From IMG/VR virus record IMGVR_UViG_3300024308_000188, positions 124,001 to 188,000 of that record: a stretch of 64,000 nucleotides of DNA, one strand, 5' to 3'. The first letter of the stretch is position 1, and each line of letters starts with the position of its first letter. Positions 24,938 to 42,447 of the stretch are shown one piece after another. A program made the translations under genes and the position numbers. A model generated the notes under the pieces. It was not told the DNA's origin. It did no database searches and saw nothing but the letters and a program-made list of their open reading frames with translations.

Positions 24938-25714
24938 ATGAAAAGTGTACAAGAGTTAAACAACGCTAGTATGTCAGACCTTTTAACTTTCGCGGAAGAA
25001 AAAGGTTTAACCATTCCTGAACAAATGCGTTCAACAAAATATCAAAAAGCTGTTGTTGAGTATTTGACCCGAAATGCAATCTACGCAAACAAAGCACCTG
25101 TTCAGGTTGTTATCGACACTACTCAGGAATGCAAACTTTTGGTTTCAAGCGAATGTGTTGATGCTTATGTAGAATTTTTAGCACAAACAGCTGCAAAAGG
25201 TCGTGCGCCTGACTTTATGAATTCAGGTTATGAAATTCGTGAAGATCTTGGTGTGGTTACTGATGCACGTTTGCTGTTTAACTACGGCATGGTAAAACGT
25301 GTTGAAAAGTTTATTCAGTTACCTAAACTTGGGCTGCATATTAATTCTTTGAAAGATAAGTTTTCCGTTTTTGTTGTTGACGTTCCGTACAGGGTTGAAT
25401 TTTCATTTGCCGACGAATTCAAAATTCAACCTATAACCCCAAATTCAATAATGGTTGACGGCCAACTTTTTACAAATTGCAGTTACAGCGTTCGTATTCT
25501 TCGTGAAGATGAAGAAGATATGGAAGAAGATGATGCTGATTTACCTGTAGAAAACTTTGTCGATTTTCAGGAAATGAGTTTGCCAGCTTTGCAGCGTTAC
25601 GCTCGTGAAAATCTGCCGGATAAAGGTGCAAGTATTGATCACGGTATTTTCACCAGCCAAAGTTTCCTGCAAGAATATTTGGATGCTGTTATAAACGGAA
25701 TTGATATAGAATAA
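24938..25714 (+). CDS. hypothetical protein with terminal Rho_N/HeH-like helical modules
   Basis: N-term ELNNASMSDLLTFAEEKGLTIP; C-term DFQEMSLPALQRYAREN. Confidence 0.7.
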   Translation: MKSVQELNNASMSDLLTFAEEKGLTIPEQMRSTKYQKAVVEYLTRNAIYANKAPVQVVIDTTQECKLLVSSECVDAYVEFLAQTAAKGRAPDFMNSGYEIREDLGVVTDARLLFNYGMVKRVEKFIQLPKLGLHINSLKDKFSVFVVDVPYRVEFSFADEFKIQPITPNSIMVDGQLFTNCSYSVRILREDEEDMEEDDADLPVENFVDFQEMSLPALQRYARENLPDKGASIDHGIFTSQSFLQEYLDAVINGIDIE

Positions 25715-25778
25715 AGTTTTGGCAAAGGTGATTTTATCAAGTCGCCTTTTACGCAAGCTTTAGCAAAAGGATATTTAT

Positions 25779-26030
25779 ATGAGAAAAGAATTAGTTGGTG
25801 CAATCGTCGCTTCTCAATTTAATCAGATTGCGATAGCCGAGGATATTAGTGAAGCCGAAGTTAAGCGTATTGTTAAAAGTTTAAAAGAAGATTACAGTGA
25901 GCCGCAGCAAGATTCTTGGCACGATGAAGGTATAGCTACTCGTTATCGTGCAACAAAAAAGTTGATTCCAAAAAGTTTACGTAGAGCAAAACGTGCTGTA
26001 CAAAAGAAGGCACGTAAAGCTCAACGATAA
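25779..26030 (+). CDS. hypothetical protein with a basic C-tail
   Basis: AAGGA RBS; 83 aa. Confidence 0.72.
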   Translation: MRKELVGAIVASQFNQIAIAEDISEAEVKRIVKSLKEDYSEPQQDSWHDEGIATRYRATKKLIPKSLRRAKRAVQKKARKAQR

Positions 26031-26032
26031 TC

Positions 26033-26090
26033 AACTGATCGAGGTGTGTCAAAAATAGTGGTTGTTATGAGCTACCACTTTTGATATAAT
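26033..26090 (+). promoter_or_regulatory. composite promoter copy 7
   Basis: ACTGATCGAGGTGTGTCAAAAA; TTGTTA, 17 nt, TATAAT 26085-26090; spacer hairpin AGTGGT/ACCACT. Confidence 0.85.
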
Positions 26091-26151
26091 TACACCATCG
26101 AAACAACAGAGAAAGTTTGTCTGAAGTTTCGTTCCCGATAAAAAGTTTGTT

Positions 26152-26241
26152 ACTAAACAAAGTGTGTCAAAAATAGTGGTTGTTATGAGCTGCCACTTTT
26201 AGTATAATGTATACATTGGTTAGGCAATAAAGCTCAGCCAA
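26152..26241 (+). promoter_or_regulatory. composite promoter copy 8 (tandem with copy 7) with AGGCAA leader hairpin
   Basis: ACTAAACAAAGTGTGTCAAAAA; TTGTTA, 17 nt, TATAAT 26203-26208; TTGGTT-aggcaataaagctc-AGCCAA. Confidence 0.85.
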
Positions 26242-26277
26242 AGTAAAAAGTTTATCAATCATTTGAGGATCTCGACC

Positions 26278-26883
26278 ATGATTAAAAAGTTTCCAAAGAA
26301 AGGTGAAAACAAAGCTCCAGTAAGTGTAAAACCTTCTGGTAAAGTTAAACCAAGTGCTAAATTTCCTGCAAAAGATACTCCGGTTAAAAAACCAAAAGCA
26401 AGTATTCCTGTTGCGGTAAGGTCAACTTTAAAAAGTGCTGGCATCGAAGTAAACAACATCGACAACTTAGATGCAAAATCATTAACTCGTGTTCTTTCTG
26501 CCGTAGATCAACTTTCAACTTTGATAAAAGAAAAGTTGGTTGATCTGAAAGGTTCTGGTACTGCCAAAACTGTAAATAAAACAGTGACTGGCAAAGCAAG
26601 TAAAAAGCAAGCGGTAGCGCAGTTCGTTGCTCCATCCACAGAGTTACGAAAGGTTTATCGTGAAGCAGGTTTGAGCGAAACTAAAGATTCGTTCAAGGCG
26701 AATTTAGCCAAAGCTAAAGAATTCGGCGTTGCATTATCAATGTTCAACAAGTCGATATTCGTAGATGATCAGGAACTTCTGGTTTACGGTGTTTCAGTGC
26801 GTGGTGGCGTTTGCCGCTTAATCTGTAAAAATGCCAAAGGCAAGGATGTTCGCGTTGAGTCAGATACTGTAATCAGTTTCTAA
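26278..26883 (+). CDS. basic protein with a K/P-rich N-terminus
   Basis: GAGGA RBS before MIKKFPKKGENKAP. Confidence 0.8.
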   Translation: MIKKFPKKGENKAPVSVKPSGKVKPSAKFPAKDTPVKKPKASIPVAVRSTLKSAGIEVNNIDNLDAKSLTRVLSAVDQLSTLIKEKLVDLKGSGTAKTVNKTVTGKASKKQAVAQFVAPSTELRKVYREAGLSETKDSFKANLAKAKEFGVALSMFNKSIFVDDQELLVYGVSVRGGVCRLICKNAKGKDVRVESDTVISF

Positions 26884-26931
26884 CAAAAAGTTTGTTTGAT
26901 TAATGTGTGGGGCAATCCTGCCCCGACCGTT

Positions 26932-26939
26932 CTGTAAAT
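26932..26939 (+). promoter_or_regulatory. CTGTAAAT candidate phage promoter
   Basis: Intergenic, just after the hairpin GGGGCA/TGCCCC; recurs at 31983, 32652, 50233 and 54376. Confidence 0.5.
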
Positions 26940-26971
26940 ATTTATTTGAATCCAATGTAAGGAAAGTTGAA

Positions 26972-28435
26972 ATGAAAGTAACTCCTAATGAAGCTTTAGT
27001 CGGTAAAAAAATTACTCTGTTAGATGGTTCGCGTGACACTATCACAGAGACAACTAAAACTGGTTACAAACTGCAAGGTCGTCGTAAAGGCGTTGCCGCA
27101 AATTGTGTTGTACGTGATGGTCAAAAGTTTGAAGAAATCGATCAGCCTGTTGACGGTGCAAAAGTTGGTTCTGGTTATGTGACTTTGCCAAAAGTTAAAA
27201 AAGCTCCGGCCAAAGCCGACAAAAAAGCTCCAGCAAAAGCTCCGGCCAAAGCCGACAAAAAACCAGCTGGCAAAAAAGTTGCTGAAACAAAACCTGCACG
27301 TAAGTCTGCCGCCAAAGTTGTGGAAGAACTGGAAGAAGTTGACGCCATTACTATCGAAAATGTTACTGAACAGTCAGGTGAAATTCGTTCAGCGGTTGAA
27401 GAAATTCTGCGCGAACATTTGCCAAAACGCTTTGACAATTTCGTTAGCGTAAACACTGGCGCACAGATCGAAGAAGAAGGTGGCGATCCGACCGTTATTC
27501 TTTGCATGTCAGATTTAACTTTTGACATTCCTGAAGAAGAGGAAGAGTTAGAAGAAGAACTAGAAGAACTGGAAGAAGAGGAAGAAGCTGTAGAATTTAA
27601 CTTCAGCGAAGAAACTTTATCTCTGGTTGAAGAAGGTCTGTGGGAAAGTCAGGTTGCCGCGAATTCAAAAGTTGCTCAACGTGTGTTTGCCGCACTGCAA
27701 CTGGACGAAGAAGAAATGGAAGAGTTTGTCATCGGTTCACGCTTAGTTGACGAAGATGGTAAAACTTACTACTTTGCTGGTATGCAACGTGATCCAGTTC
27801 GTTTGATTCTGGAAGATGAAAACGGTGAACCAAAAGATGTTGGTTCAAAAGACTTTGAAAGTTTAGACTTTGTTCCTTTCTCTGAAGAAGAGGAAACAGA
27901 AGTTGATGAACTGGAGGAAGAAGAAGTTGATGAACTGGACGAGCTGGACGAAGCCGAAGAAGAGGAAGAAGAATCTGAAGATGATTCAAATCTTTTAGAA
28001 GGCTGTGAATCTGCTGAAGAAGCCGCTGACGCACTGGCCGATTACTCTGAATCAGAAATCCGCACTTTCATCTTTGGTGCTGTTGATTTAGGTGAAGAAG
28101 GTAGCGAAGATTACGAAGCTACTGTTGATTACATCGAAGGTTTGGATAAAGAAGAACTGATCGAATACGTGGTCAGCCTGTTCTTTGAAGAAACTGACGA
28201 AGAGGAAGAGGAAGAAGAAGTTGAGGAAGGCATTACTGCCGAGGAAATCAACGAAATCCGCGACTTCGATTCTTTACTGGAAATTGCAAAACAATACAGC
28301 GATAAAGTTGGTAAAGTTTCGCAGAACATCCGTCACTTCCGTAAAATCAAAGCGTTGAAAGCTTTACTGATTGAAAAGTTGGTTGACGCTGAAGAAACTA
28401 CTGGCGAAGAGGACTTCGAGTTCGAGAGCGAGTAA
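26972..28435 (+). CDS. bipartite low-complexity protein: histone-like KKAPAK repeats plus a very acidic C-terminal two-thirds
   Basis: KKAPAKADKKAPAKAPAKADKK followed by multiple poly-Glu tracts; AAGGA RBS before MKVTPNE. Confidence 0.82.
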   Translation: MKVTPNEALVGKKITLLDGSRDTITETTKTGYKLQGRRKGVAANCVVRDGQKFEEIDQPVDGAKVGSGYVTLPKVKKAPAKADKKAPAKAPAKADKKPAGKKVAETKPARKSAAKVVEELEEVDAITIENVTEQSGEIRSAVEEILREHLPKRFDNFVSVNTGAQIEEEGGDPTVILCMSDLTFDIPEEEEELEEELEELEEEEEAVEFNFSEETLSLVEEGLWESQVAANSKVAQRVFAALQLDEEEMEEFVIGSRLVDEDGKTYYFAGMQRDPVRLILEDENGEPKDVGSKDFESLDFVPFSEEEETEVDELEEEEVDELDELDEAEEEEEESEDDSNLLEGCESAEEAADALADYSESEIRTFIFGAVDLGEEGSEDYEATVDYIEGLDKEELIEYVVSLFFEETDEEEEEEEVEEGITAEEINEIRDFDSLLEIAKQYSDKVGKVSQNIRHFRKIKALKALLIEKLVDAEETTGEEDFEFESE

Positions 28436-28527
28436 TTCTCTAGCTTAAGAGGAAGATGAAGAAGAGGAAGAATCTTTAACCAAGTAAATTGGCGGTAGGA
28501 ATTCCTACCGCCTAATCTGGAAAATTT

Positions 28528-29805
28528 ATGAATCAGCACACAAAGTTGATCTATTCAAGCATTTTGCATGAACAAGCGCCAAACGCTTTAACAAATTGTT
28601 TGATTACTACTGCTGTGCCTTTGTCTGGTGATCGTTGGGTAGCGCGAGGTAGCGCAAGCAGCGAACATCATTTCATGTTGCGTATATCACGTTCGCACCT
28701 TATTAATTTGTACAATCAAATTTGTCGTGGTAGTTATGTTGCTTGTGAAAAAGTTGCATTACTTTACGAATGCGGTTTAGCTTTGCCCCAAAGCAATATA
28801 AATAAAATGCTTTGGAATGAAGTCGCTGGTTATGATGCGGTTCAGTTGCCTGATTCCGTATTAACGAAAAAAGATCTAAGATCAGTTTTAAAAGAACACA
28901 TGCGCTCCGCTTTAGATTGCAGTGTGACTTATGTTCCTTCTGATCACTATTTAAAATTGATGAAGAGCATTTCTCAGTTCAAAATAGTAGATGGGCCAGC
29001 AAAATCTTGTTTAGGTAAAAGTTTTGTTCGTGTTCAAACTGACGCTTATGATATGTACTGCGTTTATAAAAAAGTTGCTGGTCAGACTAAGTTAGTTTCT
29101 GCTTTTCTGAATTACGTAGACTCCAAACAAAAAGAAAAGTTTGTTGATTTTACGTATCAAGCTTCAAACATTGTTCCACCGAATTTACCTGACGGTGCTT
29201 TTGGTAAAAGTGAGCAGTATTATGTTGTTTACGGCAAACTTGAGCGCAACGAATACGATCCTGAAATGGATTATGCTTCGGTGATTCATGAATGGATTAT
29301 TCACGATGTTGATCGTTTAGCTGAGATATATCGTGAACGTGCGGATCGAAAAAGTCCATATATTGGATTCTTAGATAAGTATCGTGAAAAGAAAGCAAAG
29401 GCAGTGCTTTATCTTTCAGAGTTCAATCAAATAAAACGGCCAACAAGACGCCAGATTAATTTGGCTGAAGCCGCTAAAAAGTTGATTGATGCTTTTGAAG
29501 AAAAGCGAGAAGCCAATCGTGAATTGCGTAAAAAAGCTCGTGAAGTTGCGAAAGCAAATGACCCAGTGAATTTATTTTGTTTTAAAGCATTAGATTTATT
29601 TCTTTGCTCAAATTCAAATGAGATCACATGCACTCCACCGAGCGTTAAACACCCTCAGATTATGAGCAAACTAAAAAGTTTGGGTTTTGTTTGTTGTGAT
29701 TCAAAAACAGCTCAGAGTTCCAGCCTCGAAAGCAGAAAGGGCAAAAATGGAACTCAGCCAGTTGTGAGAATTTCAAAACCTAAAATGTACTGGCAAAAAG
29801 CCTAG
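28528..29805 (+). CDS. hypothetical protein, 425 aa
   Basis: Long ORF after the hairpin GGCGGTAGG/CCTACCGCC. Confidence 0.8.
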   Translation: MNQHTKLIYSSILHEQAPNALTNCLITTAVPLSGDRWVARGSASSEHHFMLRISRSHLINLYNQICRGSYVACEKVALLYECGLALPQSNINKMLWNEVAGYDAVQLPDSVLTKKDLRSVLKEHMRSALDCSVTYVPSDHYLKLMKSISQFKIVDGPAKSCLGKSFVRVQTDAYDMYCVYKKVAGQTKLVSAFLNYVDSKQKEKFVDFTYQASNIVPPNLPDGAFGKSEQYYVVYGKLERNEYDPEMDYASVIHEWIIHDVDRLAEIYRERADRKSPYIGFLDKYREKKAKAVLYLSEFNQIKRPTRRQINLAEAAKKLIDAFEEKREANRELRKKAREVAKANDPVNLFCFKALDLFLCSNSNEITCTPPSVKHPQIMSKLKSLGFVCCDSKTAQSSSLESRKGKNGTQPVVRISKPKMYWQKA

Positions 29806-29813
29806 AGGACATT

Positions 29814-31964
29814 ATGCTAAAACCAAAACATAAGTTGTTGCCTAAAGTTAGTGCAGCTGCCGCTGCTTCTATGCAACAATCTAAAGTAGTGCCGAACTCA
29901 GCGCCTGTTGTGGCTGAACCAAAAACAAATGTTGGAGAAACCGCAATGTACGTTAACGAAGTTAAAATTCCTGCTCCAGAGAAAAAGCAATTCAATCCAT
30001 CTGTTGATTACACTAATCCGGTGAATCTTGAAGAGTTAAGTTTGAAAGGCCACAAAGATCTGTTGAACCATTTAGGTGGTAATGCGGAAGCTTTGTTGAA
30101 AGGTATTAAAAACGGTGCTGAATCTCGCAACAAACTTCGTGCCGAAATTGATCCGTTATTGGCCGCTTTATCTGGCGGAAATCCAGCAAACTCTACTTTT
30201 GATGAAGCTGATTTTGCCGAATTCGATCCGATGGTCGATTACTCAGACGCTTCAAAAGTTGAACAACTTTCTGATGACGGTCTGGCCGATCTGCTTATTC
30301 ACTTAGGCGGTTATGCCGATGAAGCTACAGAAAACGCTGAAACTTCAGACGAAGCTCGTCAAATGTTGATTGCAGCAATCAACAAAATTTATGCTGAAGA
30401 TTCAGATGAAAGCACAACTGTAGTTGTTGATGCTGTGCCGACTGCCAGCGATTTTGAAGCCGAAGAGTCGAGCGAATTTGATTTTGCAGAAAACGAAACT
30501 GTTTCAACAGCGCAGGTTATGCAGGAAATCACCGGAACTGAAAAAGTTGATGATTCAGATTTTGATGAACTTCTGGAACATGCTACCAACGGTGACGAAG
30601 ATAAATTTCTGGAAGTTTTGGACTCTATGGATCGCAAAGCCTTGCTTTCTCATTTTGAACAGCACATTAGCTTAACAGCTGATCAGCTTTCAGAAATTTC
30701 TGACTTAGGTACTTCAGAAATTCGTGAAGAATTACGCGGTCAGTATTCTGACGTTCTGGCCGTTGCTGAAAACAAAGCTTTGGCTGAAGTAGAAGCCGAA
30801 GATGATTCAGAAACTTCTGACGAAACTGACGACTTTGAAACTCATGAAGAAGAAGTCGAAGAAGTTGAACGCGACGATCCTGAAAACTATGTTTCTGATG
30901 AAGATGAAGAAGATGGTGTTCAGATTGAATTCACCGAAGAACAATTGGCTGAAATGGATGCCGAAATCGAAGCAGAAATGCAAGCTGAGGCTGAAGCTGA
31001 AGCTTTGAATGCCGAAGTGATTCGTCACTTAGAAGAAGTAGATTATTTAGGTTCAGAAGTTCCGCACTTTGAACTTACAACTTCTTCTCGCATTATTCTG
31101 GTTTTATCGGCTGGCACACAGCAAACTCGTGAAATCGATCAGGAAGAACTGGCCGCAATTTACATTGGCGAAAATGCAATGTGTGCCAATCATCCGTTAC
31201 GCCGTCGTGAAACCGATGACAAAAACATGGGCTGGTTTGTAGATCCAATGCAATCATTATCGCAAATGGTTGCAGAGTTTAACATGAAGCAGCGCGTTTA
31301 CTGCGGCCCAACAATTGCTGTTCATCAAACCGTTTATGGTATTTGTGAGAACCTGCAAAAAGTTGCAAAAGCTTTGGTCTACGGTTTAACCGATGACAAC
31401 GTATTACCAGAAGGTATCGATTTAAGCGACTTAGCTTCTATCAATGTTCAACCTTCAGTCGGTGATACTGAAAATGAAATCGTGTACAACTTTTTCGTAT
31501 CTCTGAACGTCCCAATGTTGGGCCGTAGCCGTGATTCAGAAAAGTTGCGCGGAAATCTGACGGCACTAAAAAAATCTGCTCAAGCAATTGCTGATGAAGC
31601 GACAGAAGAGTCGATTGAAATCATGGTTACTTTTGCAGCCGATTTAGATCTGCTGTTAAAATCTCGTGCTGTTGTTGATCTGTTTAACAAAACAGGCTAC
31701 TATAGCCGCGAACAGTTAGTTGAATATGTTCGTGAAAAAGCAGAACAGGCCGCTGAAATGCAGGACTCTGAATTTGAATTCGATGGTGAATTGGATGAAG
31801 AGTACGAAAGCGAAGAAGTTGAAGAAACAGAAGAAGAAATTGATTCAGAAGAAGAAACTGAGTCAGAAGTCGAAACCGACATTGTTCACACTCTGTTATC
31901 TGATTTTGATTCAATTTCTTACCTGTTGCCGTGGTCTGCAAACTCAATGATTGTCATTGAGTAA
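29814..31964 (+). CDS. large, highly acidic protein with repeated short helical modules
   Basis: 716 aa, D/E-rich linkers, basic N-terminus MLKPKHKLLPK; GAGGA RBS. Confidence 0.82.
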   Translation: MLKPKHKLLPKVSAAAAASMQQSKVVPNSAPVVAEPKTNVGETAMYVNEVKIPAPEKKQFNPSVDYTNPVNLEELSLKGHKDLLNHLGGNAEALLKGIKNGAESRNKLRAEIDPLLAALSGGNPANSTFDEADFAEFDPMVDYSDASKVEQLSDDGLADLLIHLGGYADEATENAETSDEARQMLIAAINKIYAEDSDESTTVVVDAVPTASDFEAEESSEFDFAENETVSTAQVMQEITGTEKVDDSDFDELLEHATNGDEDKFLEVLDSMDRKALLSHFEQHISLTADQLSEISDLGTSEIREELRGQYSDVLAVAENKALAEVEAEDDSETSDETDDFETHEEEVEEVERDDPENYVSDEDEEDGVQIEFTEEQLAEMDAEIEAEMQAEAEAEALNAEVIRHLEEVDYLGSEVPHFELTTSSRIILVLSAGTQQTREIDQEELAAIYIGENAMCANHPLRRRETDDKNMGWFVDPMQSLSQMVAEFNMKQRVYCGPTIAVHQTVYGICENLQKVAKALVYGLTDDNVLPEGIDLSDLASINVQPSVGDTENEIVYNFFVSLNVPMLGRSRDSEKLRGNLTALKKSAQAIADEATEESIEIMVTFAADLDLLLKSRAVVDLFNKTGYYSREQLVEYVREKAEQAAEMQDSEFEFDGELDEEYESEEVEETEEEIDSEEETESEVETDIVHTLLSDFDSISYLLPWSANSMIVIE

Positions 31965-31982
31965 GCTGCTGGTCTGCTAAAA

Positions 31983-31990
31983 CTGTAAAT
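31983..31990 (+). promoter_or_regulatory. CTGTAAAT candidate phage promoter
   Basis: Intergenic; followed by the long leader hairpin GGCAGGTC/GACCTGCC. Confidence 0.5.
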
Positions 31991-32087
31991 ACATAGGCAG
32001 GTCGGGAGGAATTTTAGAATTCTGACCTGCCGATGATAATGTAATAACTGTCGCTTTTGACTAAAATCGCAAAGGAAATTTATAGCT

Positions 32088-32609
32088 ATGTCAAACCAAA
32101 AGAAACTGCCTTTAACCAAAGGCAAAGCCCCTGTAAAAGCTGCCGGTAAAGTACCTGCCAAAGCTCCTGCTACAAAAGTTAAGAAAGCTGGCCAGCCTTC
32201 AATGCTTGATAAGTTTGAAAGCAAACTTTCCAAAATTTCTTTACGCAAGCACAACCCTAAAATGGAATTACGTGTTCGTATTGTTGCGAAACGCACTGCC
32301 CAACACCTGCAAGGTTATTTGCTGAAAATCGAAGGTGAATCTTTTGTTTTCTCACACACAAAACCTCGTTCTTCCAAGCAAACAGTTTCAATCTTTCCAG
32401 CGAAAGATGTAATCATGTACACTGGTGCTGTAGGTGAACGCGCTCAAATCACCGTGATGTCACAAGAAGTTGTTCGTGAAATCAAACGTGCCAATGTTGA
32501 AACTCGCGGTTCTGCCAATGTTATCACAAATCTGGACACTGGTGACGTTACTGTTTTTAATACGTCAAATACTGACGGCTTTGAAATGCAGACCGAACTG
32601 GCCGAGTAA
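32088..32609 (+). CDS. basic protein: K/A/P-rich N-tail plus a small beta domain
   Basis: KKLPLTKGKAPVKAAGKVPAKAPATKVKK; AAGGA RBS. Confidence 0.8.
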   Translation: MSNQKKLPLTKGKAPVKAAGKVPAKAPATKVKKAGQPSMLDKFESKLSKISLRKHNPKMELRVRIVAKRTAQHLQGYLLKIEGESFVFSHTKPRSSKQTVSIFPAKDVIMYTGAVGERAQITVMSQEVVREIKRANVETRGSANVITNLDTGDVTVFNTSNTDGFEMQTELAE

Positions 32610-32651
32610 TTCTTTTCAAGTATTCCCTTAGTTTAGTCTGCTTTGGGAATA

Positions 32652-32659
32652 CTGTAAAT
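32652..32659 (+). promoter_or_regulatory. CTGTAAAT candidate phage promoter
   Basis: Intergenic, abutting the hairpin AGTATTCCC/GGGAATACT. Confidence 0.5.
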
Positions 32660-32721
32660 TCTTTAGTATACCTAAATGGTATAAACAATTTTTTATAACA
32701 GTAGAACATTGGGAAAATATC

Positions 32722-33447
32722 ATGTCAAAGAAAAAGACCGCCGGAAAAACAGTTGCTTCTGCGTTACTGGAATTGCTGACAGTTTGTGTTGAAGAAGGTG
32801 TTATCGAAGCTGATGACGTTGTTGCCGCTGTAGGCGCTCCTGCCGGTAAATCCTCCAAAGGCAAAAAATCCAAAAAGGATGAAGAAGTCGAAGAGGAAGA
32901 AGAGGAAGAAGAGTCTGATGAACCAGACTTTGAAGAAATGAATCTGAAGCAGCTGAAAAAGTTTGCTAAAGACAACGAAATCGAGATCCCTAAAAAGATC
33001 AAAGATGAAGATGACCTGCGCGAGTTTTTAGCTGAGCAGTATTCCGAAGAGGAAGAGGAAGAAGAGGAAGAAGAGGAAGAAGAATCTGATTCTCCTGACT
33101 TCGAGGACATGGATCACAAAGCACTGAAAAAGTTTGTGAAAGAAAATGATCTGGAAGTTCCTGCCAAAGTTCTGAAAGACGAAGATGACCTGCGCGAGTG
33201 GTTGGAAGAAAACTATTCCTCTGACGAAGAAGAGGAAGAAGAGGAAGAAGAGTCTGAAGAACCAGACTTTGAAGAAATGGATTTAAAAGAAATGAAGGCT
33301 TTCGCAAAAGAAAACGATCTTGAGCCGCCTAAGAAGGCGCTGAAGAACGAAGATACTCTGCGTGAGTGGCTGGAAGAAAACTATTCCTCTGACGAAGAAG
33401 AGGAAGAGGAAGAAGAGGAAGAAGAGGAAGAGTGGGAAGAAGATTAA
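32722..33447 (+). CDS. extremely acidic protein with three tandem ~40 aa helical modules separated by poly-Glu
   Basis: 3x PDFE(E/D)M..K.LK.F.K.N.LE.P.K.LK.ED.LREWL.E.YS-E(n). Confidence 0.85.
   Translation: MSKKKTAGKTVASALLELLTVCVEEGVIEADDVVAAVGAPAGKSSKGKKSKKDEEVEEEEEEEESDEPDFEEMNLKQLKKFAKDNEIEIPKKIKDEDDLREFLAEQYSEEEEEEEEEEEEESDSPDFEDMDHKALKKFVKENDLEVPAKVLKDEDDLREWLEENYSSDEEEEEEEEESEEPDFEEMDLKEMKAFAKENDLEPPKKALKNEDTLREWLEENYSSDEEEEEEEEEEEEEWEED
32923..33440 (+). repeat. three ~170 bp direct repeats plus GAAGAGGAA tracts
   Basis: CCAGACTTTGAAGAAATG, GAAGATGACCTGCGCGAG and GAAGAAAACTATTCCTCTGACGAAGAAGAGGAAG recur. Confidence 0.85.
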
Positions 33448-33535
33448 TCCCTGACCTCTAACTAACCTTCTTTAAAATTTAAAGCGATGTGTATTGCATC
33501 GCTTTCCTTTAATTCGCAATAAGAGAAATTGAAAA

Positions 33536-34003
33536 ATGAGTAAACAAGCTATTTCCGCACTGAACAAAAGTGCAACTGCTTCTACAAAGCAAGCCGCTGC
33601 TTTACGCAAACAAGCAGAAGCTTTAGTTAAAGCCGCTGAACAAGCAGAAGCAGTTGCTGCCGCTACAAAACAGCAAGCCGAAGCTTTAGCAGGTAATCCA
33701 GCTCCTGCCGCAAAAGCTCCTGCCAAAGCTGACAAAAAAGCTCCGGTAGCCGATAAGAAAGCTCCGGCCAAAGCGGATAAGAAAGCTGACAAAAAAGCTG
33801 ACAAAAAAGCTCCGGCCAAAGCGGATAAGAAAGCTGATAAAAAGTCTGCTGACAAAAAAGCTCCGGCCAAGTCAGACAAGAAAGCTGACAAAAAGCCAGC
33901 TGATAAAAAGTCTGCTGACAAAAAAGCTCCGGCCAAGTCAGACAAGAAAGCTGACAAAAAGCCTTCTACAAAAAAGAAAAATAACGACTTCGATTTTGAA
34001 TAA
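33536..34003 (+). CDS. histone H1-like / AlgP-like Lys-Ala-Pro DNA-condensing protein
   Basis: N-terminal Ala-rich coiled coil followed by repeated KKAPAKADKK / KADKK units. Confidence 0.8.
   Translation: MSKQAISALNKSATASTKQAAALRKQAEALVKAAEQAEAVAAATKQQAEALAGNPAPAAKAPAKADKKAPVADKKAPAKADKKADKKADKKAPAKADKKADKKSADKKAPAKSDKKADKKPADKKSADKKAPAKSDKKADKKPSTKKKNNDFDFE
33712..33963 (+). repeat. tandem imperfect repeats encoding KKAPAK(A/S)DKK
   Basis: AAAGCTCCGGCCAA, GCTGACAAAAA and GATAAGAAAGC repeated. Confidence 0.85.
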
Positions 34004-34025
34004 TAAATTTTAGTCGTTATAAAAC

Positions 34026-34050
34026 AAAAGCCGCTTCTTGCGGCTTTTTT
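34026..34050 (+). terminator. intrinsic terminator
   Basis: AAAAGCCGC-ttctt-GCGGCTTTTTT. Confidence 0.85.
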
Positions 34051-34082
34051 CGTAAAAGTTCTCTAGCGAATGGAATTGAGAA

Positions 34083-34511: not shown

Positions 34512-34875
34512 AAAGCGCTTGACTTCTTTGCAGAATCAAGGAACTTCGTGGTTTGAAAAGTTTGAGGCTAAGGTTGATGTTTTCCGGCAAGATGTTTTCC
34601 GAGCTTTTATTTTGGATGGTTATATTTTCCTGATAACAGCTACAGGTAACTCAATCACAGCACCTATTGAAATTGTCGCCACCGTTCTTGACGAAAATTT
34701 TTCTCAGATACCAGTCAAGTTGGATTCTTCTGATCTGAAATTGGTTAATGCTTATGTAAAAGTTCTTAACCTTATTTCTTCTGGAAGATTACCAGATGCT
34801 GATCCAGATCTGACTTCAAAAATAATTCAAGTGTTGGAGTCTCGTTATTTCAATACAAATAACAATACGCCTTAA
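34498..34875 (+). CDS. hypothetical protein
   Basis: Overlapping start; 125 aa. Confidence 0.7.
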   Translation: MPSIKKRLTSLQNQGTSWFEKFEAKVDVFRQDVFRAFILDGYIFLITATGNSITAPIEIVATVLDENFSQIPVKLDSSDLKLVNAYVKVLNLISSGRLPDADPDLTSKIIQVLESRYFNTNNNTP

Positions 34876-34887
34876 GGAAAGATCCCA

Positions 34888-36870
34888 ATGGCTAAAGCAA
34901 AAGCAAAATCTGCAAATACTTATGATGAAGATAGTATTCAGGTTCACAAAGGTTTAGCTGGTGTTAGATTAAACGCTGGCATGTACATGGGTGAGCTTGG
35001 CGATTCAATGATGTATCGCATGGGCAAAGAAGCTGTTGAAAACAGCCGCGATGAATACGAAGCTGGACGCAACAACGCAATCTATGTAGCCTTTAATAAC
35101 AAAACAAGTGAATACGTTTTTGCCGACTGCGCTCAAGGTATTCCTGTTGGAATGAAAACAGTTGAAGGTAAAAAAGTAAGCGCATTAACAGTAATTCTTA
35201 CTGAACTTCATGCTGGCGGAAAATTTGATGTAAAAGCTTATCAGACTTCAGGTGGTACGCACGGTGTTGGTATTTCTGCGGTCAATGCTTTATCAAAAGA
35301 ACTTGAGGTCTGGACTTGTCGTGAAGATCAGTGGTACTACCAAAGTTTTTCATGCGGAAAAGAAACCAGTCCTGTTAAAAAGGTTCCAGACACTTTCCTC
35401 AAGAAAAAGTTTGGTTATCTTTTGCCGCTCAAGAAAAAGTTTAAGCGACTTGGCACTATCATTCGCTTGGTTCCAGATCAAAGCGTGATAAGCGTTGATG
35501 CTAGTCGTACCTCAAAACTTAAAACATATACCCAAGCTGTTTTGGAAGAACAAAAGTTTGCTGATTATTTAAAGTTCATGAGTACCATGAATAGCAAGCT
35601 TTATATCGGTTTCCTAAACCTTGAAACAAACAAAGAACAGGTTTTCTACAATGATAAAGGTTTGGGTGCTGTAGTCAGTTCAATAATTTCTGATCATGAT
35701 TTAGAGCCTTTGGGTAAGCCATTCGAGTTCGATGGCTCAAGCCTGAAAGTTGCTATTCAATGGTCTAATCACTATGACAGTGATCTGTTCAGAAGTTATG
35801 TAAATAGTAGTCCAACAATAGATCATGGTACGCATGTAAATGGTTTCCGTGCGGCCATGTCAAAAGCTTTGAAAAACTATCTGCCCAAAAAAGCAGGTAA
35901 GTTTAAGCCAGAAGATCTTTATGTTGGCGCAGTTGCTATTATCAACTGGAAAATGAACAGCGCTCAATTTAGTGGTCAGGTAAAAGATAAACTGGTATCT
36001 AAAATCGATAACGAAGTTTGTGATTTACTGACTCAACCATTAACCGATTTTTTTGCAAAGAACAAAACATTAGCCAAGCAGATTATAAAACGCGCAAGTG
36101 ATGTTGCGGCTTCCCGTGAAGATCTTGCTAAAACAATGAAAGGCATGAGCGAAGTTAAAAAAGGTGGAAGTAAGCTGCCGATAAAACTTTATGAAGCTCC
36201 AGATTGTAAACCGCATGAGCGTGAGCTGTATTTTGTCGAAGGCGATTCGGCTGGCGGTACTGCCAAAAATGCTCGTGGCTTTAATCAGGAAGTTTTAAAA
36301 CTTGGCGGTAAAATTCCAAACGCATTGAATGTTAGTCTAAGTGCCTTACTTTCAAATGACCGCATTCAAGATATGCTGAACAGTTTGGGAGTTGACATAA
36401 AAAGTTTGGATGTTAAAGCTGATAATCCTACATTCAGTACAAAGAATCTGCGAGTTGCTGTTGCAATGTTGCTTGCTGATGCTGATGCTGATGGATCTCA
36501 CATTAACGTACTTATCACCGCATTTTTCTATAAACTTATGCCCGACTTTATTAAAGAAGGTCGTTTGTTTGTTGTTGACGCTCAATTGTACAACGCACTC
36601 GTTAATGGTGTGCATTACAGCGGAAACACAATGGAAGAGTGTTTAGCTAAGTTACCAAAAAATGCTCCGAAGGGAAGTGTGTTCCGTGCAAAAGGTTGGG
36701 GAGAGACAGATGCAGATTTACTTGAAGCCATAGCATTTGATATTAACAACAGAAAGTTGATTCAAATTGAATATGGCAAAGTTCAAGAAGATCTTGCGTT
36801 TTACAGATCAGTTGTAGGTGAAGATGCCTCTGCCAGACGGCAATTGTTGGGGTTAAGTTCCAACGATTAA
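34888..36870 (+). CDS. gyrB: type IIA topoisomerase, GyrB/ParE-like subunit
   Basis: GHKL ATPase (EAVENSRDE, D..QGIP, LHAGGKFD, SGGTHGVGISAVNALS), TOPRIM EGDSAGG and DADADGSHI, KGWGE. Confidence 0.95.
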   Translation: MAKAKAKSANTYDEDSIQVHKGLAGVRLNAGMYMGELGDSMMYRMGKEAVENSRDEYEAGRNNAIYVAFNNKTSEYVFADCAQGIPVGMKTVEGKKVSALTVILTELHAGGKFDVKAYQTSGGTHGVGISAVNALSKELEVWTCREDQWYYQSFSCGKETSPVKKVPDTFLKKKFGYLLPLKKKFKRLGTIIRLVPDQSVISVDASRTSKLKTYTQAVLEEQKFADYLKFMSTMNSKLYIGFLNLETNKEQVFYNDKGLGAVVSSIISDHDLEPLGKPFEFDGSSLKVAIQWSNHYDSDLFRSYVNSSPTIDHGTHVNGFRAAMSKALKNYLPKKAGKFKPEDLYVGAVAIINWKMNSAQFSGQVKDKLVSKIDNEVCDLLTQPLTDFFAKNKTLAKQIIKRASDVAASREDLAKTMKGMSEVKKGGSKLPIKLYEAPDCKPHERELYFVEGDSAGGTAKNARGFNQEVLKLGGKIPNALNVSLSALLSNDRIQDMLNSLGVDIKSLDVKADNPTFSTKNLRVAVAMLLADADADGSHINVLITAFFYKLMPDFIKEGRLFVVDAQLYNALVNGVHYSGNTMEECLAKLPKNAPKGSVFRAKGWGETDADLLEAIAFDINNRKLIQIEYGKVQEDLAFYRSVVGEDASARRQLLGLSSND

Positions 36871-36882
36871 GAGGATCGTGAA

Positions 36883-37272
36883 ATGGGACAACGCTACTAT
36901 GCTCTAATGGACTTAAGCTTTATTCCAATAAAGATGAATCCAGATCACATGCGAAATAATAGTTTGACTGTGTTTTGGGTTCGACTTTCATTTATCAACA
37001 CAAAGATTAAACGGGCCGCTTTGATTGTACTTAGTAATGATGGTACAATCGTAAAAAGTGTTTGGCCCACAAAATCGAAAACAATATCTTCAGTTATATT
37101 GAATGTGTTTGAGAGAACTTCTCTTGATGGTGACGATTGGAATTGGGACGAGCTTTTAAAAATAAGTCTGGCGCGAAAGCGTATGATTCAGTATTATGGA
37201 TCAAGAGAGTCTTATCGCAGACGTATTGCTTTGCTTCCAGTTACGCAAAATAGTTTGCATAATATTTGTTGA
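36883..37272 (+). CDS. hypothetical protein
   Basis: GAGGA RBS; 129 aa. Confidence 0.7.
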   Translation: MGQRYYALMDLSFIPIKMNPDHMRNNSLTVFWVRLSFINTKIKRAALIVLSNDGTIVKSVWPTKSKTISSVILNVFERTSLDGDDWNWDELLKISLARKRMIQYYGSRESYRRRIALLPVTQNSLHNIC

Positions 37273-37281
37273 GGAAATTGC

Positions 37282-37707
37282 ATGATTAAAAAACAAATTG
37301 TATTCATGTATATGGCTCAAGGTGTAGTCGAAGAAAGTTGTCGATGGATAAAAGCTGAACTTGAAGTCAACGACAATCCTAAAAAATTGTTGGAAACTCG
37401 ATTGCAGTGTATGGCCTTAGCTATTGTGGATGCGAACGGATTTTTCATAAAACGCCCTCCACAAAATATTATTGGTAGCGTTTCCCGTGTTTACACTACA
37501 GGTCTTTATTGGTTGGGTAAGAATAGTAAATTCCTGACAGACACGTTGCTTAATGAATTGAGTGAAAAGAAAACTCTTTCAACATTAGGACTGGACTCTG
37601 TGAGAGCATATGTTTCTTATTTGAGTTCAAATAATCCGTATGATCAAGTTCAATTCACTTCATTCCTGAAAGAAGTGTTACCTAAAGGAACACCATCTTT
37701 AGTATGA
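37282..37707 (+). CDS. hypothetical protein
   Basis: GAGGA RBS; 141 aa. Confidence 0.7.
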   Translation: MIKKQIVFMYMAQGVVEESCRWIKAELEVNDNPKKLLETRLQCMALAIVDANGFFIKRPPQNIIGSVSRVYTTGLYWLGKNSKFLTDTLLNELSEKKTLSTLGLDSVRAYVSYLSSNNPYDQVQFTSFLKEVLPKGTPSLV

Positions 37708-37765
37708 ACTGATCCAAGTGTGTCAAAAATCAGGGGTTTATTTCAATACCTTATTTTGGTATAAT
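37707..37765 (+). promoter_or_regulatory. composite promoter copy 9 (upstream of gyrA)
   Basis: AACTGATCCAAGTGTGTCAAAAA; 33 nt from TGTCAA to TATAAT 37760-37765. Confidence 0.78.
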
Positions 37766-37805
37766 CCGGCCTGTTCGCTTACACAAAAAGTTGGTAAACT
37801 AAACA

Positions 37806-39449
37806 ATGAAATCAAAAAAGCCGCCAGCAAAAACAAAGAAAGTTTCTAAGACTGAGTTGGGAGATATTAAACAACATAAAAAGTCGAAGAAAAATTTACC
37901 CGCAGTTGTTGAACCTAATCAATTCAAACTGCCTTCCACTGTACTGATGAAAACTATTGTCAAAGAAGATTTGGCAAACTTTGCAAAAAGAAATTTAACT
38001 CATTACGGTGAATACGTTGTACAAGATCGTGCTGTTCCAGAATTCCGTGATGGATTAAAGCCAGTTCACCGCCACATTATTTATGCAATGTCTCAGCTGA
38101 ATTTATTCGGTTCTGACTTTAAAAAGTGTGCGCGTATTGTTGGTGATACAATTGGTAAGTATCATCCTCACGGTGACTCTGCAACGTATGGTGCATTAGT
38201 TACGTTAGCCAATACAATTCCAAAACTTATTCAAGGTCGAGGAAATTTTGGCAGTCCACTCGATATGGCGGCAGCTCAGCGTTATACTGAAGCGCGTTTG
38301 AGTGATTACAGCAAACTTTTTCTTTTGGATAAAGGTTATCTTGAAGTTGTTCCGCGTATAAACAACTTTGATGACAGCGAAAAAATTCCGTTGTATTTGC
38401 CTTCGCTTCTTCCAACAATGCTGTTGATTGGAAATGCTGGTGGTATTGCCTACGGTGTTCGTGCTTGTAATCCTGCTTTTGAAATTGAAGGCGTTACAAA
38501 ACTTATTCAAATTGTATTGGAAAAAGGCGATTTGAAATCTTCTGATTGTGTAAAGCATTTAAAAATTCAAGCTCCTTTTGGATCTGATTGCGTTAGCACA
38601 CCAGAAGAACTTGCAAGCTTTATTGAAACAGGTAGAGCAAAGGCAATAAAATATTGTCCGAAAGTTCAAGTTGATTACAAAAATAAAATCGTTGAAATTG
38701 TTTCTTATTCTCCCGGTTTCGCATCTGAAGATGGCGTTGCTAAAAAACGTGATAAGATTTTAGAATTACCCGAAGTTAGTCGTTGGGTAAGTGACTGTGG
38801 TGATAAACGTCCGAACGCTGGCCCTTATGGTGCATATTATTATGTTGTACCAAAACGTGGAATGTCAGATGACGGCCTTTTTGATTTAGCTGAAAAAATT
38901 CGTAAGATGTTGACTGGCAGTGAGTTCTATAACTTAGGACTTACAATAAACAACGTCGATGGAACTGCTAAATTCCTTTACTGTAACTTTGCGACCTATA
39001 TTAAAAACTGGGTTCGCTATCGTGTGGAATTGGAAAAGCGTTATCTGGAAAACATTATTGCAAAACGCGAACGCGATTTGTGGGAATACAACGTATTGTC
39101 CTACGCTGTTATCAACAAGAATAAAATCTTGGAAGTAATGAAAAAAGCTTTGGACAAAGATGATCCAGATACTTACACTGCAAAAACATTGAAGATTCCT
39201 CAAGATGAAGCTACTTTCATTTTGGAATTGAAAATGCGTAGGCTGGCAAAACTTGAACTGAAAGCGCTACAGGACAAGATTAAAATTGCTACTGCCGACA
39301 TTAAAGGATGGAAACGCGATCACAAAGATCCTAATCCTCGTATCGCTTCTTCCTTGACCGAATCTGTAAATAAGTATGTACGGATGGTAAATGCTTCAAT
39401 CGCAGACACTAAAAAGTCTGAGAAGAAGCGCAAGAAAAAAGCAGACTGA
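37806..39449 (+). CDS. gyrA: type IIA topoisomerase, GyrA/ParC-like subunit lacking the C-terminal pinwheel
   Basis: [53 protein letters not shown] (catalytic Tyr); only 547 aa. Confidence 0.95.
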
Positions 39450-39550
39450 CGCTGCTTTAGGATAAAGGCAAGAGGATTATAATTTATAATCCTCAACACC
39501 TTTCGGGCCTAGCCCATTATAACAAACAGAAAATTAGGGAAATTAACACA

Positions 39551-40936
39551 ATGTCAGAAGTCCTTTACGCGACGGTACTTCAATCATTGATGTCGAGCAT
39601 TAGCTCAACAGACAATTTGATTAAAAAGGCTGCAACACCTAAAAAGTTTGCTAAAGCTAGTGAAACACTGGCTGACCTATCATCTACTATAGATGCTTTA
39701 GCTGACTTCGATTCTAGCTCAAAGCGGGATCGTAAATTTACCGCACAGCGAAAACCTGCTCGGTATTTAGCTAACACTATACGTTCTTTAAAGGATGCGT
39801 TGGAAAATCGTGAGATTAATCTCACTAGATTTTGTGAATTGATCAGAACAGAAATGTCTGACAGATTGCAAGATCTAAAAGATTCTTCGCAGACCCATAT
39901 AAAAAGGATCGAGCAAAATCCAGATCTTTTAATGGAAGTAAGTGACGACGAAGTTGGCCATGCCATTTTTGTTGAATCCTACAAAAAAGTTTCTGGTGCT
40001 TCAAAATCCAAGGCAGAACCTGTCGAGGAGTACGAAGAGATTGCCGATTTTTCTCAAGCTCAATATGAATTTGTGACAAACAGATTGGCTGTTCATAGTC
40101 AAGCTGTACACAAAGCATTAGTCAGCAAAATAAAATCTGATAAATTAAATTTCTCCAGAAGTGCTGTAATACCAACGCAGTGCCCTGTTACAGTTAACTT
40201 TGAAAATGTTGCTTTACGCAGCACAAAACTTTTACGTCACATATTTACTGGTGTCGATGCGCTTGGCTTTGCTGGCCCTGATAGCAGTGATGTTGCTTTA
40301 ATTTTACCTAATCAAATTCTTTTGCAGTTTAGCAAAAGTCAAAGCGAATTGTTGATTGCTACAAAACACGACGATTCAAAGTTTGCCGATGCCGTAACAA
40401 AAAACAAGTCTGCAATGAAAGCGGAAAAAAGTTTGTTACGTAAACTTCTGACCGAACGTGAAAAACTAAATAACAGAAAAGAAGGGGCAAAGCGTACTGG
40501 AACTCTGGACTCTGAATTACGTAAAAAACTTGAAGCCGAACTGAAATCGGTTCAAGTTAAAATAGATACTTCTGAAAAGATGATCTCTATTTTGAAACGT
40601 CATGGAGTAGAAGCTAAAAGTATCTATGATTCCAAGGCTCGATTCCTTGACAAGAAAACCTCAAATGTTTATTTTGAGCGCGTTAATCAATTTCTTGATG
40701 ACGCTAGATCTCGCGGCCATGAATATAGTTTAATGTCAAATGATTTTGCTACCAGTCCTACTAATAGCGATATTTCCTTGGCATGGATCGTACCAACAGC
40801 CGTCTATAAAAAGTTGTATGCTCAAACAAAAGGCAATATCAAAGTTTTGTCATGGGGACTTCCACTTTCAAATAAAAGTTTAGGAGTTTCAAATGGAAAA
40901 CAAACTGCCAGTGGTAAAAAGAGCCGACGGCTGTGA
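39551..40936 (+). CDS. hypothetical protein with a coiled coil
   Basis: 461 aa ORF. Confidence 0.8.
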   Translation: MSEVLYATVLQSLMSSISSTDNLIKKAATPKKFAKASETLADLSSTIDALADFDSSSKRDRKFTAQRKPARYLANTIRSLKDALENREINLTRFCELIRTEMSDRLQDLKDSSQTHIKRIEQNPDLLMEVSDDEVGHAIFVESYKKVSGASKSKAEPVEEYEEIADFSQAQYEFVTNRLAVHSQAVHKALVSKIKSDKLNFSRSAVIPTQCPVTVNFENVALRSTKLLRHIFTGVDALGFAGPDSSDVALILPNQILLQFSKSQSELLIATKHDDSKFADAVTKNKSAMKAEKSLLRKLLTEREKLNNRKEGAKRTGTLDSELRKKLEAELKSVQVKIDTSEKMISILKRHGVEAKSIYDSKARFLDKKTSNVYFERVNQFLDDARSRGHEYSLMSNDFATSPTNSDISLAWIVPTAVYKKLYAQTKGNIKVLSWGLPLSNKSLGVSNGKQTASGKKSRRL

Positions 40937-41444
40937 GTTATGTTGTATTTGTATGAATTGGTTTGCCAATATACATTGGCACCACACTATTCCAAGATCG
41001 TTAGGTGGTAGTGATAGTTTGCAAATTCCTATCGATGGAGCTTGCCATACAACACTTCATGCTCATGCAGATGCTATAGTTGCACGTATTGGTGCTAAAA
41101 ACCCAAAACCCTTAAGGAAATTTTGGGCTGACCCTGAGACAGAACTTAGAGCTAAAACTTGGTTAGAAATTTTGGTCAAGGCATTATTGAGTCCTCCAGT
41201 TTCTTCCAATGCTAAAATGACTTTACTTCCTATGGTACATGCCGATCCAGCAACTCGGCAAGGATTAGAGTTACTCAAAAAAGATCTTCCGGGGATAACC
41301 AATATGGAGCAGACGATCTTATATTGTATCAATCACACGTTGAGATCCAAAGGATTAAAAAATGACAACAAAAAGACAGACATCAGTAAACAAAGCGCAG
41401 ATAAAGATAAAAGTCATAACAGAAGAAAAACTAACTTGTGGTGA
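40893..41444 (+). CDS. HNH endonuclease-domain protein
   Basis: CCIC....IHWHHTIPRSLGGSD...IDGACHTTLH. Confidence 0.75.
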   Translation: MENKLPVVKRADGCELCCICMNWFANIHWHHTIPRSLGGSDSLQIPIDGACHTTLHAHADAIVARIGAKNPKPLRKFWADPETELRAKTWLEILVKALLSPPVSSNAKMTLLPMVHADPATRQGLELLKKDLPGITNMEQTILYCINHTLRSKGLKNDNKKTDISKQSADKDKSHNRRKTNLW

Positions 41445-42447
41445 GTGCATTGGACTCACACGAGAACGGTTGATTGCTGGTGACGATACGCCTTGCATTA
41501 AACAAGGTCGCTTTGAATACTCTTCGAGCTGTGAAAATTTTAAACCCAACAGTGTGGCTCTGGCCGAGAGCATCGAGAAAAATGGCAGTTCACTTTATGA
41601 GCTTGCCGATATTATGCGTGAATTTGATAATGGACAGCTAAGACTTTTTGGTGCAGCTATTTTAAACGAACATATTACTCGCAAACAAGGATATACATTC
41701 TTACAAAAAGTTTATGTTCGTTTCCGTGGAACTTTGGCTTCGGATTATTTATCAAATTTCATGACAGCACGTATTCTTTCAGCTGATAAAGATTATGTGC
41801 GTGTGTGCAGTGATGATGGAAAGATTGTACTGACTTTCCAAAATCTAGGAAAAGAGAAGAATATATTTACGGTTTCTCAGTTTTCTATTTTCCGCCGTCA
41901 GATGGAATTCAAAGGTCGAGTTGTAGATCCTAAGTTGGACAGACCGACCGCTAAAAATGTAAAAGCTCTTGAACTTCCATTTGAATTAAAATTGAATACC
42001 AATGGAGTCATGGGTTACATTGATGACATAGGATCTTTGGCTAAACGCAACAAAATTAAACGTGAAAGCTCTGATCAGCAAGTTTACAGCCTTGTTGATA
42101 TTGCTCGTGATATTGACCGTGGTTATGCAAAAGCTCATAAAGAAACGGATGAAGATCATTACGAACTGGATGAACTTGACTACAAGCGTGAAACCACGAT
42201 TGAAGATATTCAGGAAATGGAAGAAGCGCAACTTCTGAAGTTTGCCAAAAAGAACAAAATTCGTATACCTCGTGATATTAAAGAAAGCGATGACGTCGAT
42301 GACTTAAGACAACATTTGTCAACAGCTTATCTTGAAAAATTGGAACTGGAATTGGCAGAGGCTCAGGCCGAAACGAAAAACTCTGGTAAGAAACGAAGTC
42401 TTAAAGGCGGTAAGATCAAAACTGAACTTGGCGATATGGCAGACTAA
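41362..42447 (+). CDS. hypothetical protein: Cys-rich N-terminus, C-terminal copy of the acidic-cluster module
   Basis: CGECIGL..C..C; EDIQEMEEAQLLKFAKKNKIRIPRDIKESDDVDDLRQHL. Confidence 0.75.
   Translation: MTTKRQTSVNKAQIKIKVITEEKLTCGECIGLTRERLIAGDDTPCIKQGRFEYSSSCENFKPNSVALAESIEKNGSSLYELADIMREFDNGQLRLFGAAILNEHITRKQGYTFLQKVYVRFRGTLASDYLSNFMTARILSADKDYVRVCSDDGKIVLTFQNLGKEKNIFTVSQFSIFRRQMEFKGRVVDPKLDRPTAKNVKALELPFELKLNTNGVMGYIDDIGSLAKRNKIKRESSDQQVYSLVDIARDIDRGYAKAHKETDEDHYELDELDYKRETTIEDIQEMEEAQLLKFAKKNKIRIPRDIKESDDVDDLRQHLSTAYLEKLELELAEAQAETKNSGKKRSLKGGKIKTELGDMAD

Follow-up and report, generated by a model that had tools for sequence, protein, structure and literature searches.

The window analysed here, a stretch of 64,000 nucleotides, runs from base 124001 to base 188000 of the IMG/VR virus record IMGVR_UViG_3300024308_000188 (214.5 kb), and our subject is a short helical module of ~42 amino acids (aa) that recurs in proteins encoded near two topoisomerase subunit genes. 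A preliminary description had reported the module as dispersed through several unrelated proteins, five in number. We detect six copies in three of these, P0004 (32722-33447), P0005 (41362-42447) and P0001 (24938-25714), all encoded on the + strand, and assign the module to the HeH/SAP/Rho_N superfamily of small helix-extended loop-helix domains.

Three tandem copies in P0004

P0004 is a protein of 241 aa with a net charge of -69, in which a conserved N-terminal helix and a K-rich patch precede three modules set between poly-E linkers, and the chain ends in the tip ...EEEWEED. The copies, which had been noticed before in this open reading frame (ORF), occupy aa 68-108 (32923-33045, +), aa 125-166 (33094-33219, +) and aa 181-222 (33262-33387, +) and were found with a hidden Markov model (HMM) of the module. 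The first has an independent E-value (iE) of 1.1e-25 (72 bits with an independent profile), the second served for the AlphaFold model described below, and the third was also found with the independent profile. At the DNA level the repeat has a period of 168 bp with 78% matches. Comparison between the copies gave a ratio of nonsynonymous to synonymous substitution rates (dN/dS) of ~0.1-0.16, close to 0.1 for copy 3 against copy 2, with dS saturated; the repeats are therefore old duplications under purifying selection and not the result of recent slippage. The number of copies varies among P0004 orthologues, with two in P0009, three in P0013 and four in P0006 of the uncultured Phage NCTB and in P0022.

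Contigs of four public sequencing runs could be placed on 32000-34000, and their module segments are near-identical in one subsurface and one wastewater study. The short-read assemblies of these runs all end at GAA/GAG (poly-E) repeats (33040-33094, 33221-33254 and 33386-33438), so metagenomic contigs of genes of this type are broken into pieces and copy number is unreliable in short-read data. Two array-bearing homologues sit on contigs shorter than 2 kb. Direct searches returned little: tblastn of P0004 against 50,697 phage records gave no match, probably because of the low-complexity filter, megablast of the region gave none either, and a word-index protein search with one P0004 repeat retrieved a single orthologue.

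A C-terminal copy in P0005 and divergent copies in P0001

P0005 (361 aa) carries one module at its C-terminus, at aa 281-324 (42202-42333, +), homologous to the P0004 repeats. When P0004 was compared with the phage's own genome, P0005 matched at an E-value of 1.7e-7 with 42% identity. An HMM built from the three P0004 repeats only recovered P0005 at E 9.5e-7 and 25.3 bits, while the best score obtained in 20 residue-shuffled proteomes was 8.5 bits, confirming the close match described previously. Since the matches to P0005 of its orthologues in NCTB, Pseudomonas phage PaBG and Erwinia phage Y3 end near aa 256, and the module is absent there, we read this copy as a putative lineage-specific addition.

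The rest of P0005 is a conserved N-terminal domain (aa 1-270, 41362-42171) with a CxxC...C...C motif, of which aa 10-270 match phrog_17701, and the gene is syntenic, lying between a GyrA-like gene and DnaB. Other annotators have labelled phrog_17701 "DNA topoisomerase", and the orthologues of PaBG and Y3 are annotated "DNA topoisomerase 4 subunit A". This name found no support for the N-terminal domain in Pfam, NCBIfam or the PDB (no match by phmmer), and a search for look-alikes in the ESM Atlas was uninformative, the Atlas model being poor. The ORFs at 40893-41444 and 41362-42447 overlap by 83 nt in different frames, and an AGGA lies 8 nt upstream of the ATG at 41362. The overlap seems to be conserved, and the start of the NCTB orthologue is probably mis-called, as similarity to P0005 already sets in 5' of the start given in the NCTB annotation.

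In P0001 (258 aa), a module was found at each end of a conserved central domain without known family, which is followed by an acidic linker. Both copies are divergent. The N-terminal one (aa 4-46, 24947-25075, +) matches Pfam Rho_N at E 0.045 over aa 6-31 and the independent profile at iE 0.0094, and the C-terminal one (aa 207-251, 25556-25690, +) has an HMM iE of 0.046-0.049 and hhalign values of 84-94%. Aligned with the module profile by hhalign, the C-terminal end of P0001 reached 94% and the N-terminal end 63%, compared with 0.3% for the middle of the protein, used as control. A leave-one-out HMM recovered P0001 at E 0.03 (10.9 bits), above every one of the 20 shuffled proteomes, and a second-iteration profile, made of 160 modules of other genomes and none from P0001, matched it at E 8.8e-7 over aa 14-41 and aa 209-225. 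Both ends are kept in three orthologues at 53-98% identity. The weaker copies suggested for this protein are thus supported at both ends, at a lower level than those of P0004 and P0005.

Chance resemblance and the two proteins not recovered

The preliminary description had also placed copies in P0003 (29814-31964, +; 716 aa, net charge -119) and at the C-terminus of P0002 (26972-28435, +), and it was here that the HMM approach, which recovered P0005 and P0001 above all shuffles, did not bear the claim out. For P0003 the second-iteration HMM gave E 0.75, which is noise, and hhalign 6.8%. This protein has repeats of its own, of ~55 aa, at aa 64-122, 141-197 and 260-316 (window 30003-30761), which share the pattern VDY...LS..G..DLL.HLGG...R..L, the other two being 39% and 27% identical to the first, and none of the tests identified them with the HeH module. 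For aa 55-325, the AlphaFold model had a predicted local distance difference test score (pLDDT) of 57, too poor for comparison.

P0002 consists of an N-terminal domain, basic H1-like AKKAP repeats and a long acidic region. Its true start is at 26972 (M24 of the longer ORF), as the orthologue in L006 begins at the corresponding Met; the longest ORF starts 23 codons too early (26903-26971). The AKKAP-type K/A/P repeat shows a weak match to the Rv3852-family model. At the C-terminus no HMM match to the module was obtained, and hhalign gave 4.8%. The only indication is indirect and comes from P0129, a P0002 orthologue of 28% identity, which has a canonical module at aa 311-355 (iE 3.5e-11) and also a module-like C-terminal segment to which the C-terminus of P0002 can be aligned.

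A rival explanation is that the proteins resemble each other by composition only, through amphipathic helices set in charged, low-complexity sequence, without any shared module. P0003 and P0002, with E 0.75 or no match and hhalign values of 5-7%, behave as such compositional chance would predict. The same explanation is refuted for P0004, P0005 and P0001 by the shuffles and the independent profile: the scores of P0005 and P0001 lie well clear of those from 20 shuffled proteomes, both proteins are recovered by a profile from unrelated genomes, and residues D4, M8, L13, K29 and R35 are 78-91% conserved over 157 modules. As an account of the module as a whole, we therefore regard it as highly improbable; it stands only for P0003 and P0002. 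In a complete, near-identical genome of 319.5 kb the module was detected in these same five places and nowhere else. Our count is therefore six copies, in P0004, P0005 and P0001, and not copies in five proteins.

Fold and superfamily of the module

The AlphaFold model of the module (alignment A2, six copies) is confident, with a pLDDT of 88. Its two helices, at residues 10-19 and 32-42, are linked by an extended loop that makes a short turn at 26-29, in agreement with the two-helix unit of ~35-45 aa that characterises the superfamily. We compared this model exhaustively with 48,161 PDB representatives by VIA-align. Many of the top 50 rows were SAP, LEM or Rho_N domains or the C-terminal domain of endonuclease VII, aligned over the whole module, with Z values of 3.2-5.2, which lie within the range that, by the tool's own statement, small helical units can reach by chance. 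Among these neighbours were the C-terminal SAP domains of CDNF and MANF (Z 5.2 and 4.5), residues 111-155 of T4 endonuclease VII (Z 5.0), residues 1-45 of Rho (Z 4.3), the SLX4 SAP domain, the LEM or LEM-like domains of emerin and LAP2 (Z 3.2-4.1), and the SAP domains of PIAS1, Hcc-1, SF3B2, E1B-AP5 and FAN1. The named neighbours in BFVD were HeH/LEM, SAP and Rho_N proteins, and the look-alikes in the ESM Atlas were small unnamed viral proteins only. Because the Z values are low and the Foldseek E-values non-significant, we treat the predicted structure as consistent with an HeH/SAP/Rho_N fold and not as decisive.

The decisive evidence was transitive and came from sequence. The module profile was searched against 1.84 billion cluster representatives, where 147 proteins matched at E <= 1e-3, and 146 of these were scanned with Pfam at the same threshold. 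Rho_N was found in 50 of the 146 homologues (best E 1.3e-23), SAP in 30, SAP_new25 in 20, Ish1 in 14, HeH in 9, Fan1_SAP in 3 and ARMET_C in 2. Some individual homologues pass the curated thresholds themselves: P0013, which represents the cluster of P0004 at 50% identity, exceeds the gathering scores of Ish1 (27.6 against 26.6) and DUF6887, and P0109 and P0077 pass the cut-offs of HeH, Rho_N and SAP. HeH, SAP and Rho_N are grouped in the Pfam HeH clan. A profile search of PDB sequences with the module gave no significant match, and NCBIfam gave compositional matches only.

Three other identities were considered and rejected. Pfam HA (helicase-associated) matched P0004 only partially (positions 9-40 of 64; 23.4 bits, E 7.7e-5), below its cut-off of 28.4. 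The family phrog_3281, labelled "endonuclease VII", matches with its positions 40-104 of 107 P0004 three times and P0005 once, as well as 95 of the 146 homologues. What matches is the helical C-terminal part of the family, corresponding to the HeH-like module alone. The label agrees with the structural alignment to the endonuclease VII C-terminal domain, but as no nuclease domain is present it is misleading as a function here and is corrected accordingly. P0004 also lacks a zinc-binding Cys/His cluster, since its aa 1-66 hold a single Cys and no His. Identity with the transcription terminator Rho was dismissed because the Pfam scan of P0001-P0005 revealed neither an RNA-binding cold-shock/OB domain nor a RecA-type ATPase.

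In summary, the model, the lists of structural neighbours and the Pfam matches of the homologues support the earlier guess of a Rho_N/HeH/SAP/LEM fold, and with it the conclusion that the module forms a small domain that folds on its own as helix, extended loop and helix, and that it belongs to a sub-type of the HeH/SAP/Rho_N superfamily common in phage proteins.

The module in other proteins

Near-complete modules were found in 140 matches, with one copy in 55, two in 61, three in 19, four in 4 and five in 1. The arrangement of acidic linker and HeH module in series recurs in at least 85 protein clusters with 2-5 copies, and of the ~140 metagenomic protein clusters that carry the module most match phage families. 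The 15 residues flanking the module on either side are on average ~50% Asp/Glu, and the median net charge of the module is -4. The placement of the modules in acidic linkers, as noted at the outset for this DNA, is therefore a recurrent architecture and not peculiar to this phage.

The module signature reads D-[LFI]-x-x-M...L..[FY]AKEN.[IL].[IV]P...K....[LIV]R..[IL]. Over 157 non-redundant modules, the most conserved positions are M8 and L13 (91% each), D4 (86%), K29 (85%) and R35 (78%), followed by K18 (62%), N20 (59%), A17 (57%) and P25 (55%); L, F or I occupies position 5, F, Y or L position 16, I or L positions 22 and 38, I or V position 24, and L, I or V position 34. Three of the conserved positions, K18, K29 and R35, are basic, each kept in 62-85% of the modules.

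Wherever a homologue carried another domain, it was a DNA-transaction domain. Four proteins are fusions to a gp32-like single-stranded DNA-binding protein (SSB), as in P0025, where the SSB domain at aa 44-190 is followed by four modules, and nine proteins are fusions to DUF669. P0109 is a SNF2 helicase with three C-terminal modules, and P0038 joins two modules to AAA_24, the domain class of the PHROG "Sak4-like" family phrog_124. Further fusions involve a GyrB-type ATPase and members of PHROG families that bear the labels SSB, helicase, DNA polymerase and Arc-like repressor. Searches of the literature turned up no study on the function of tandem HeH/Rho_N modules in phages.

Genomic context of the carriers

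The virus record is a linear fragment, ~85% complete; a 99%-identical IMG/VR genome is complete, at 319,518 bp with direct terminal repeats, and near-identical DNA was found in subsurface and wastewater metagenomes of two studies. Genes in the window are densely packed on the + strand, with a G+C content of 37-40%. Synteny was found with Phage NCTB (LT598654) and, to a looser degree, with PaBG and Y3. A run of unknown genes precedes a gene for a GyrB-like topoisomerase II subunit (34888-36870), the GyrA-like subunit is encoded at 37806-39449, and three conserved unknown genes separate the latter from DnaB (44061-45428), after which terminase and portal follow in the gene order of PaBG. The module carriers thus lie in the DNA-replication region of a jumbo phage of the PaBG/NCTB type, with a genome of ~320 kb. 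A single tRNA gene, tRNA-Gly (TCC), lies at 525-599 of the window.

Directly 3' of P0004, P0159 (33536-34003, +; 155 aa) is encoded, consisting of an alanine-rich helix, ~12 ADKKAPAK-like repeats and the C-terminal end ...NNDFDFE, and without Pfam match. An antisense ORF at 33472-33957 overlaps this gene and is probably a repeat artefact. K/A/P-rich N-termini are also found in the ORFs at 32088 and 26263. Three proteins of the cluster end in an acidic-aromatic tip, P0002 in EDFEFESE (28412-28435), P0004 in EEEWEED (33424-33447) and P0159 in DFDFE (33983-34003). Such tips are rare, occurring in 14 of the 146 module-bearing homologues and in 6 of 263 genome ORFs.

A putative role in anchoring DNA-transaction complexes

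We propose, with moderate confidence, that the module serves phage DNA-transaction complexes as an adaptor for anchoring or recruitment, tuned by avidity. The proposal builds on the existence and homology of the copies, their predicted fold, the purifying selection acting on them, their superfamily affiliation and the fusions to DNA-transaction proteins elsewhere; the ligand and the avidity mechanism are what we infer beyond these. In this phage the module has undergone tandem duplication within P0004, a very acidic protein, and has also been joined to the ends of P0001 and P0005, two further proteins of the DNA-replication/topoisomerase region. Each copy would act as a weak anchor, holding its carrier on phage DNA or on a replication or nucleoid complex bound to DNA, copy number would set the avidity, and the poly-acidic linkers may serve as flexible spacers that repel or mimic DNA. 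Our confidence in the domain assignment is much higher than in this statement as a whole.

Several observations weigh against the proposal. The Z values of 4-5 obtained for the module are in the range that a small helical unit can reach by chance, and the Foldseek E-values were not significant, the best PDB match being the SAP domain 1h1j at E 1.7. The copies in the window remain below every Pfam gathering score (Rho_N 17.9 and 14.2 bits against 24.9), which is why they would receive no name in plain automated annotation. The modules are also net acidic and P0004 is strongly so overall, which makes strong non-specific DNA binding a disfavoured mode.

Whether the direct ligand is DNA or protein seems to us nearly even. 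In this superfamily, nucleic acid or a defined protein partner would be contacted through the loop and the N-terminus of helix 2. Members of the superfamily that touch nucleic acid include SAP and LEM-like domains, the primary site region of Rho and the endonuclease VII C-terminal domain, and others dock to proteins, as in the pairs LEM-BAF, MANF SAP-BiP and SLX4 SAP-MUS81. An anchor on nucleic acid or nucleoprotein is favoured by the fusion partners, the proximity of the topoisomerase genes and the three conserved basic positions. Docking to a common protein is favoured by the net acidic charge of the modules, the extreme charge of P0004 and the SSB-tail-like architecture. The latter idea, already raised in the preliminary description, may be developed into a full alternative, in which the module is a docking tag that brings P0001, P0004 and P0005, and elsewhere SSB, helicases and annealases, to one common partner, with P0004, made up almost entirely of modules, as a multivalent scaffold or competitor. 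The docking pairs just named, which include MANF/CDNF SAP with BiP, are found among the fold matches; the same module sits on functionally different replication proteins, amid flanks that are about half D/E; and the tips of P0002, P0004 and P0159 resemble the recruitment tails of the SSB type. Against the alternative, most superfamily members of known function bind nucleic acid, and three basic positions are among the conserved exposed residues. We consider it less probable than the anchoring adaptor, which we retain as the preferred reading.

The charges of the cluster invite two further interpretations. Along 26263-34003 the net charges of the products alternate between basic and acidic (+21, -90, +18, -119, +14, -69 and +23). 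The first interpretation is that poly-acidic tracts of the P0004 type act as a DNA mimic or acidic chaperone, sequestering basic DNA-binding proteins of the host nucleoid or the phage's own AKKAP proteins, with the HeH modules only targeting or spacing them. The alternation agrees with it, as do the (ADKKAPAK)n protein P0159 directly 3' of P0004 and the weak match of the P0002 repeats to the Rv3852-family model. Yet it argues from composition, leaves the selection on the module unexplained, and does not account for the module on P0005, P0001 and the SSB and helicase fusions, which lack such long acidic tracts; we judge it quite unlikely.

The second interpretation is motivated by the H1-like K/A/P tails next to the acidic carriers. 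K/A/P-rich tails of this kind resemble histone H1 and the bacterial H1-like nucleoid proteins, which fits a role in DNA organisation. Carried further, 26263-34003 could encode a chromatin-like or condensate-forming system, in which HeH "stickers" on poly-E "spacers" (three in P0004, two in P0001, and P0005 as a one-sticker client) would act together with the H1-like AKKAP proteins (the P0002 basic segment, P0159, P0160 and P0161), organising or compartmentalising the 320 kb genome and recruiting topoisomerase and replisome components during infection. We offer this as an unlikely, speculative reading.

In conclusion, the analysis provides a fold and a superfamily for three hypothetical proteins of a poorly annotated jumbo-phage clade. 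The superfamily is known and the tandem-acidic architecture widespread, which makes this a fairly ordinary phage adaptor domain and the gain a modest one, at the level of annotation and without surprise. Identification of the ligand would make clear by what means an entire group of phage replication proteins is anchored or recruited.

Comparison with known systems

The acidic-tailed phage SSBs, such as T4 gp32 and T7 gp2.5, are a functional analogy. The four gp32-like SSB homologues carry acidic linkers and modules at their C-terminus, and P0002, P0004 and P0159 end in acidic-aromatic tips; P0004, in contrast, has no OB fold, and the analogy concerns the architecture of the tail only. The likeness to T4 endonuclease VII lies in its C-terminal domain (1e7d residues 111-155), which aligns over 44 residues, whereas the module carriers lack both its nuclease and its zinc-binding N-terminal domain.

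HeH and LEM domains (PF12949 HeH; Ish1, PF10281; emerin and LAP2) are related to the module through the Pfam matches of its homologues, the Ish1 score of P0013 and the LEM alignments. The carriers differ from LEM proteins in having no membrane anchor or nuclear-envelope context, and we know of no BAF-type partner in bacteria. SAP domains are eukaryotic two-helix motifs that bind chromatin or DNA or dock to proteins, and these (PF02037, with its relatives SAP_new25, Fan1_SAP and ARMET_C) dominate the fold neighbours. Unlike them, the module is net acidic and, set against the SAP consensus, has N/E and P at the usual Gly positions.

With Rho_N (PF07498), the helical domain at the N-terminus of the transcription terminator Rho, the module shares equal length and the helix-loop-helix pattern ...L..[FY]AKE..I.I....K...L...L. 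It departs from Rho_N in standing here in tandem between poly-E linkers and in the scores of the window copies, which lie below the gathering cut-off; many phage proteins are annotated as "Rho termination factor N-terminal domain-containing".

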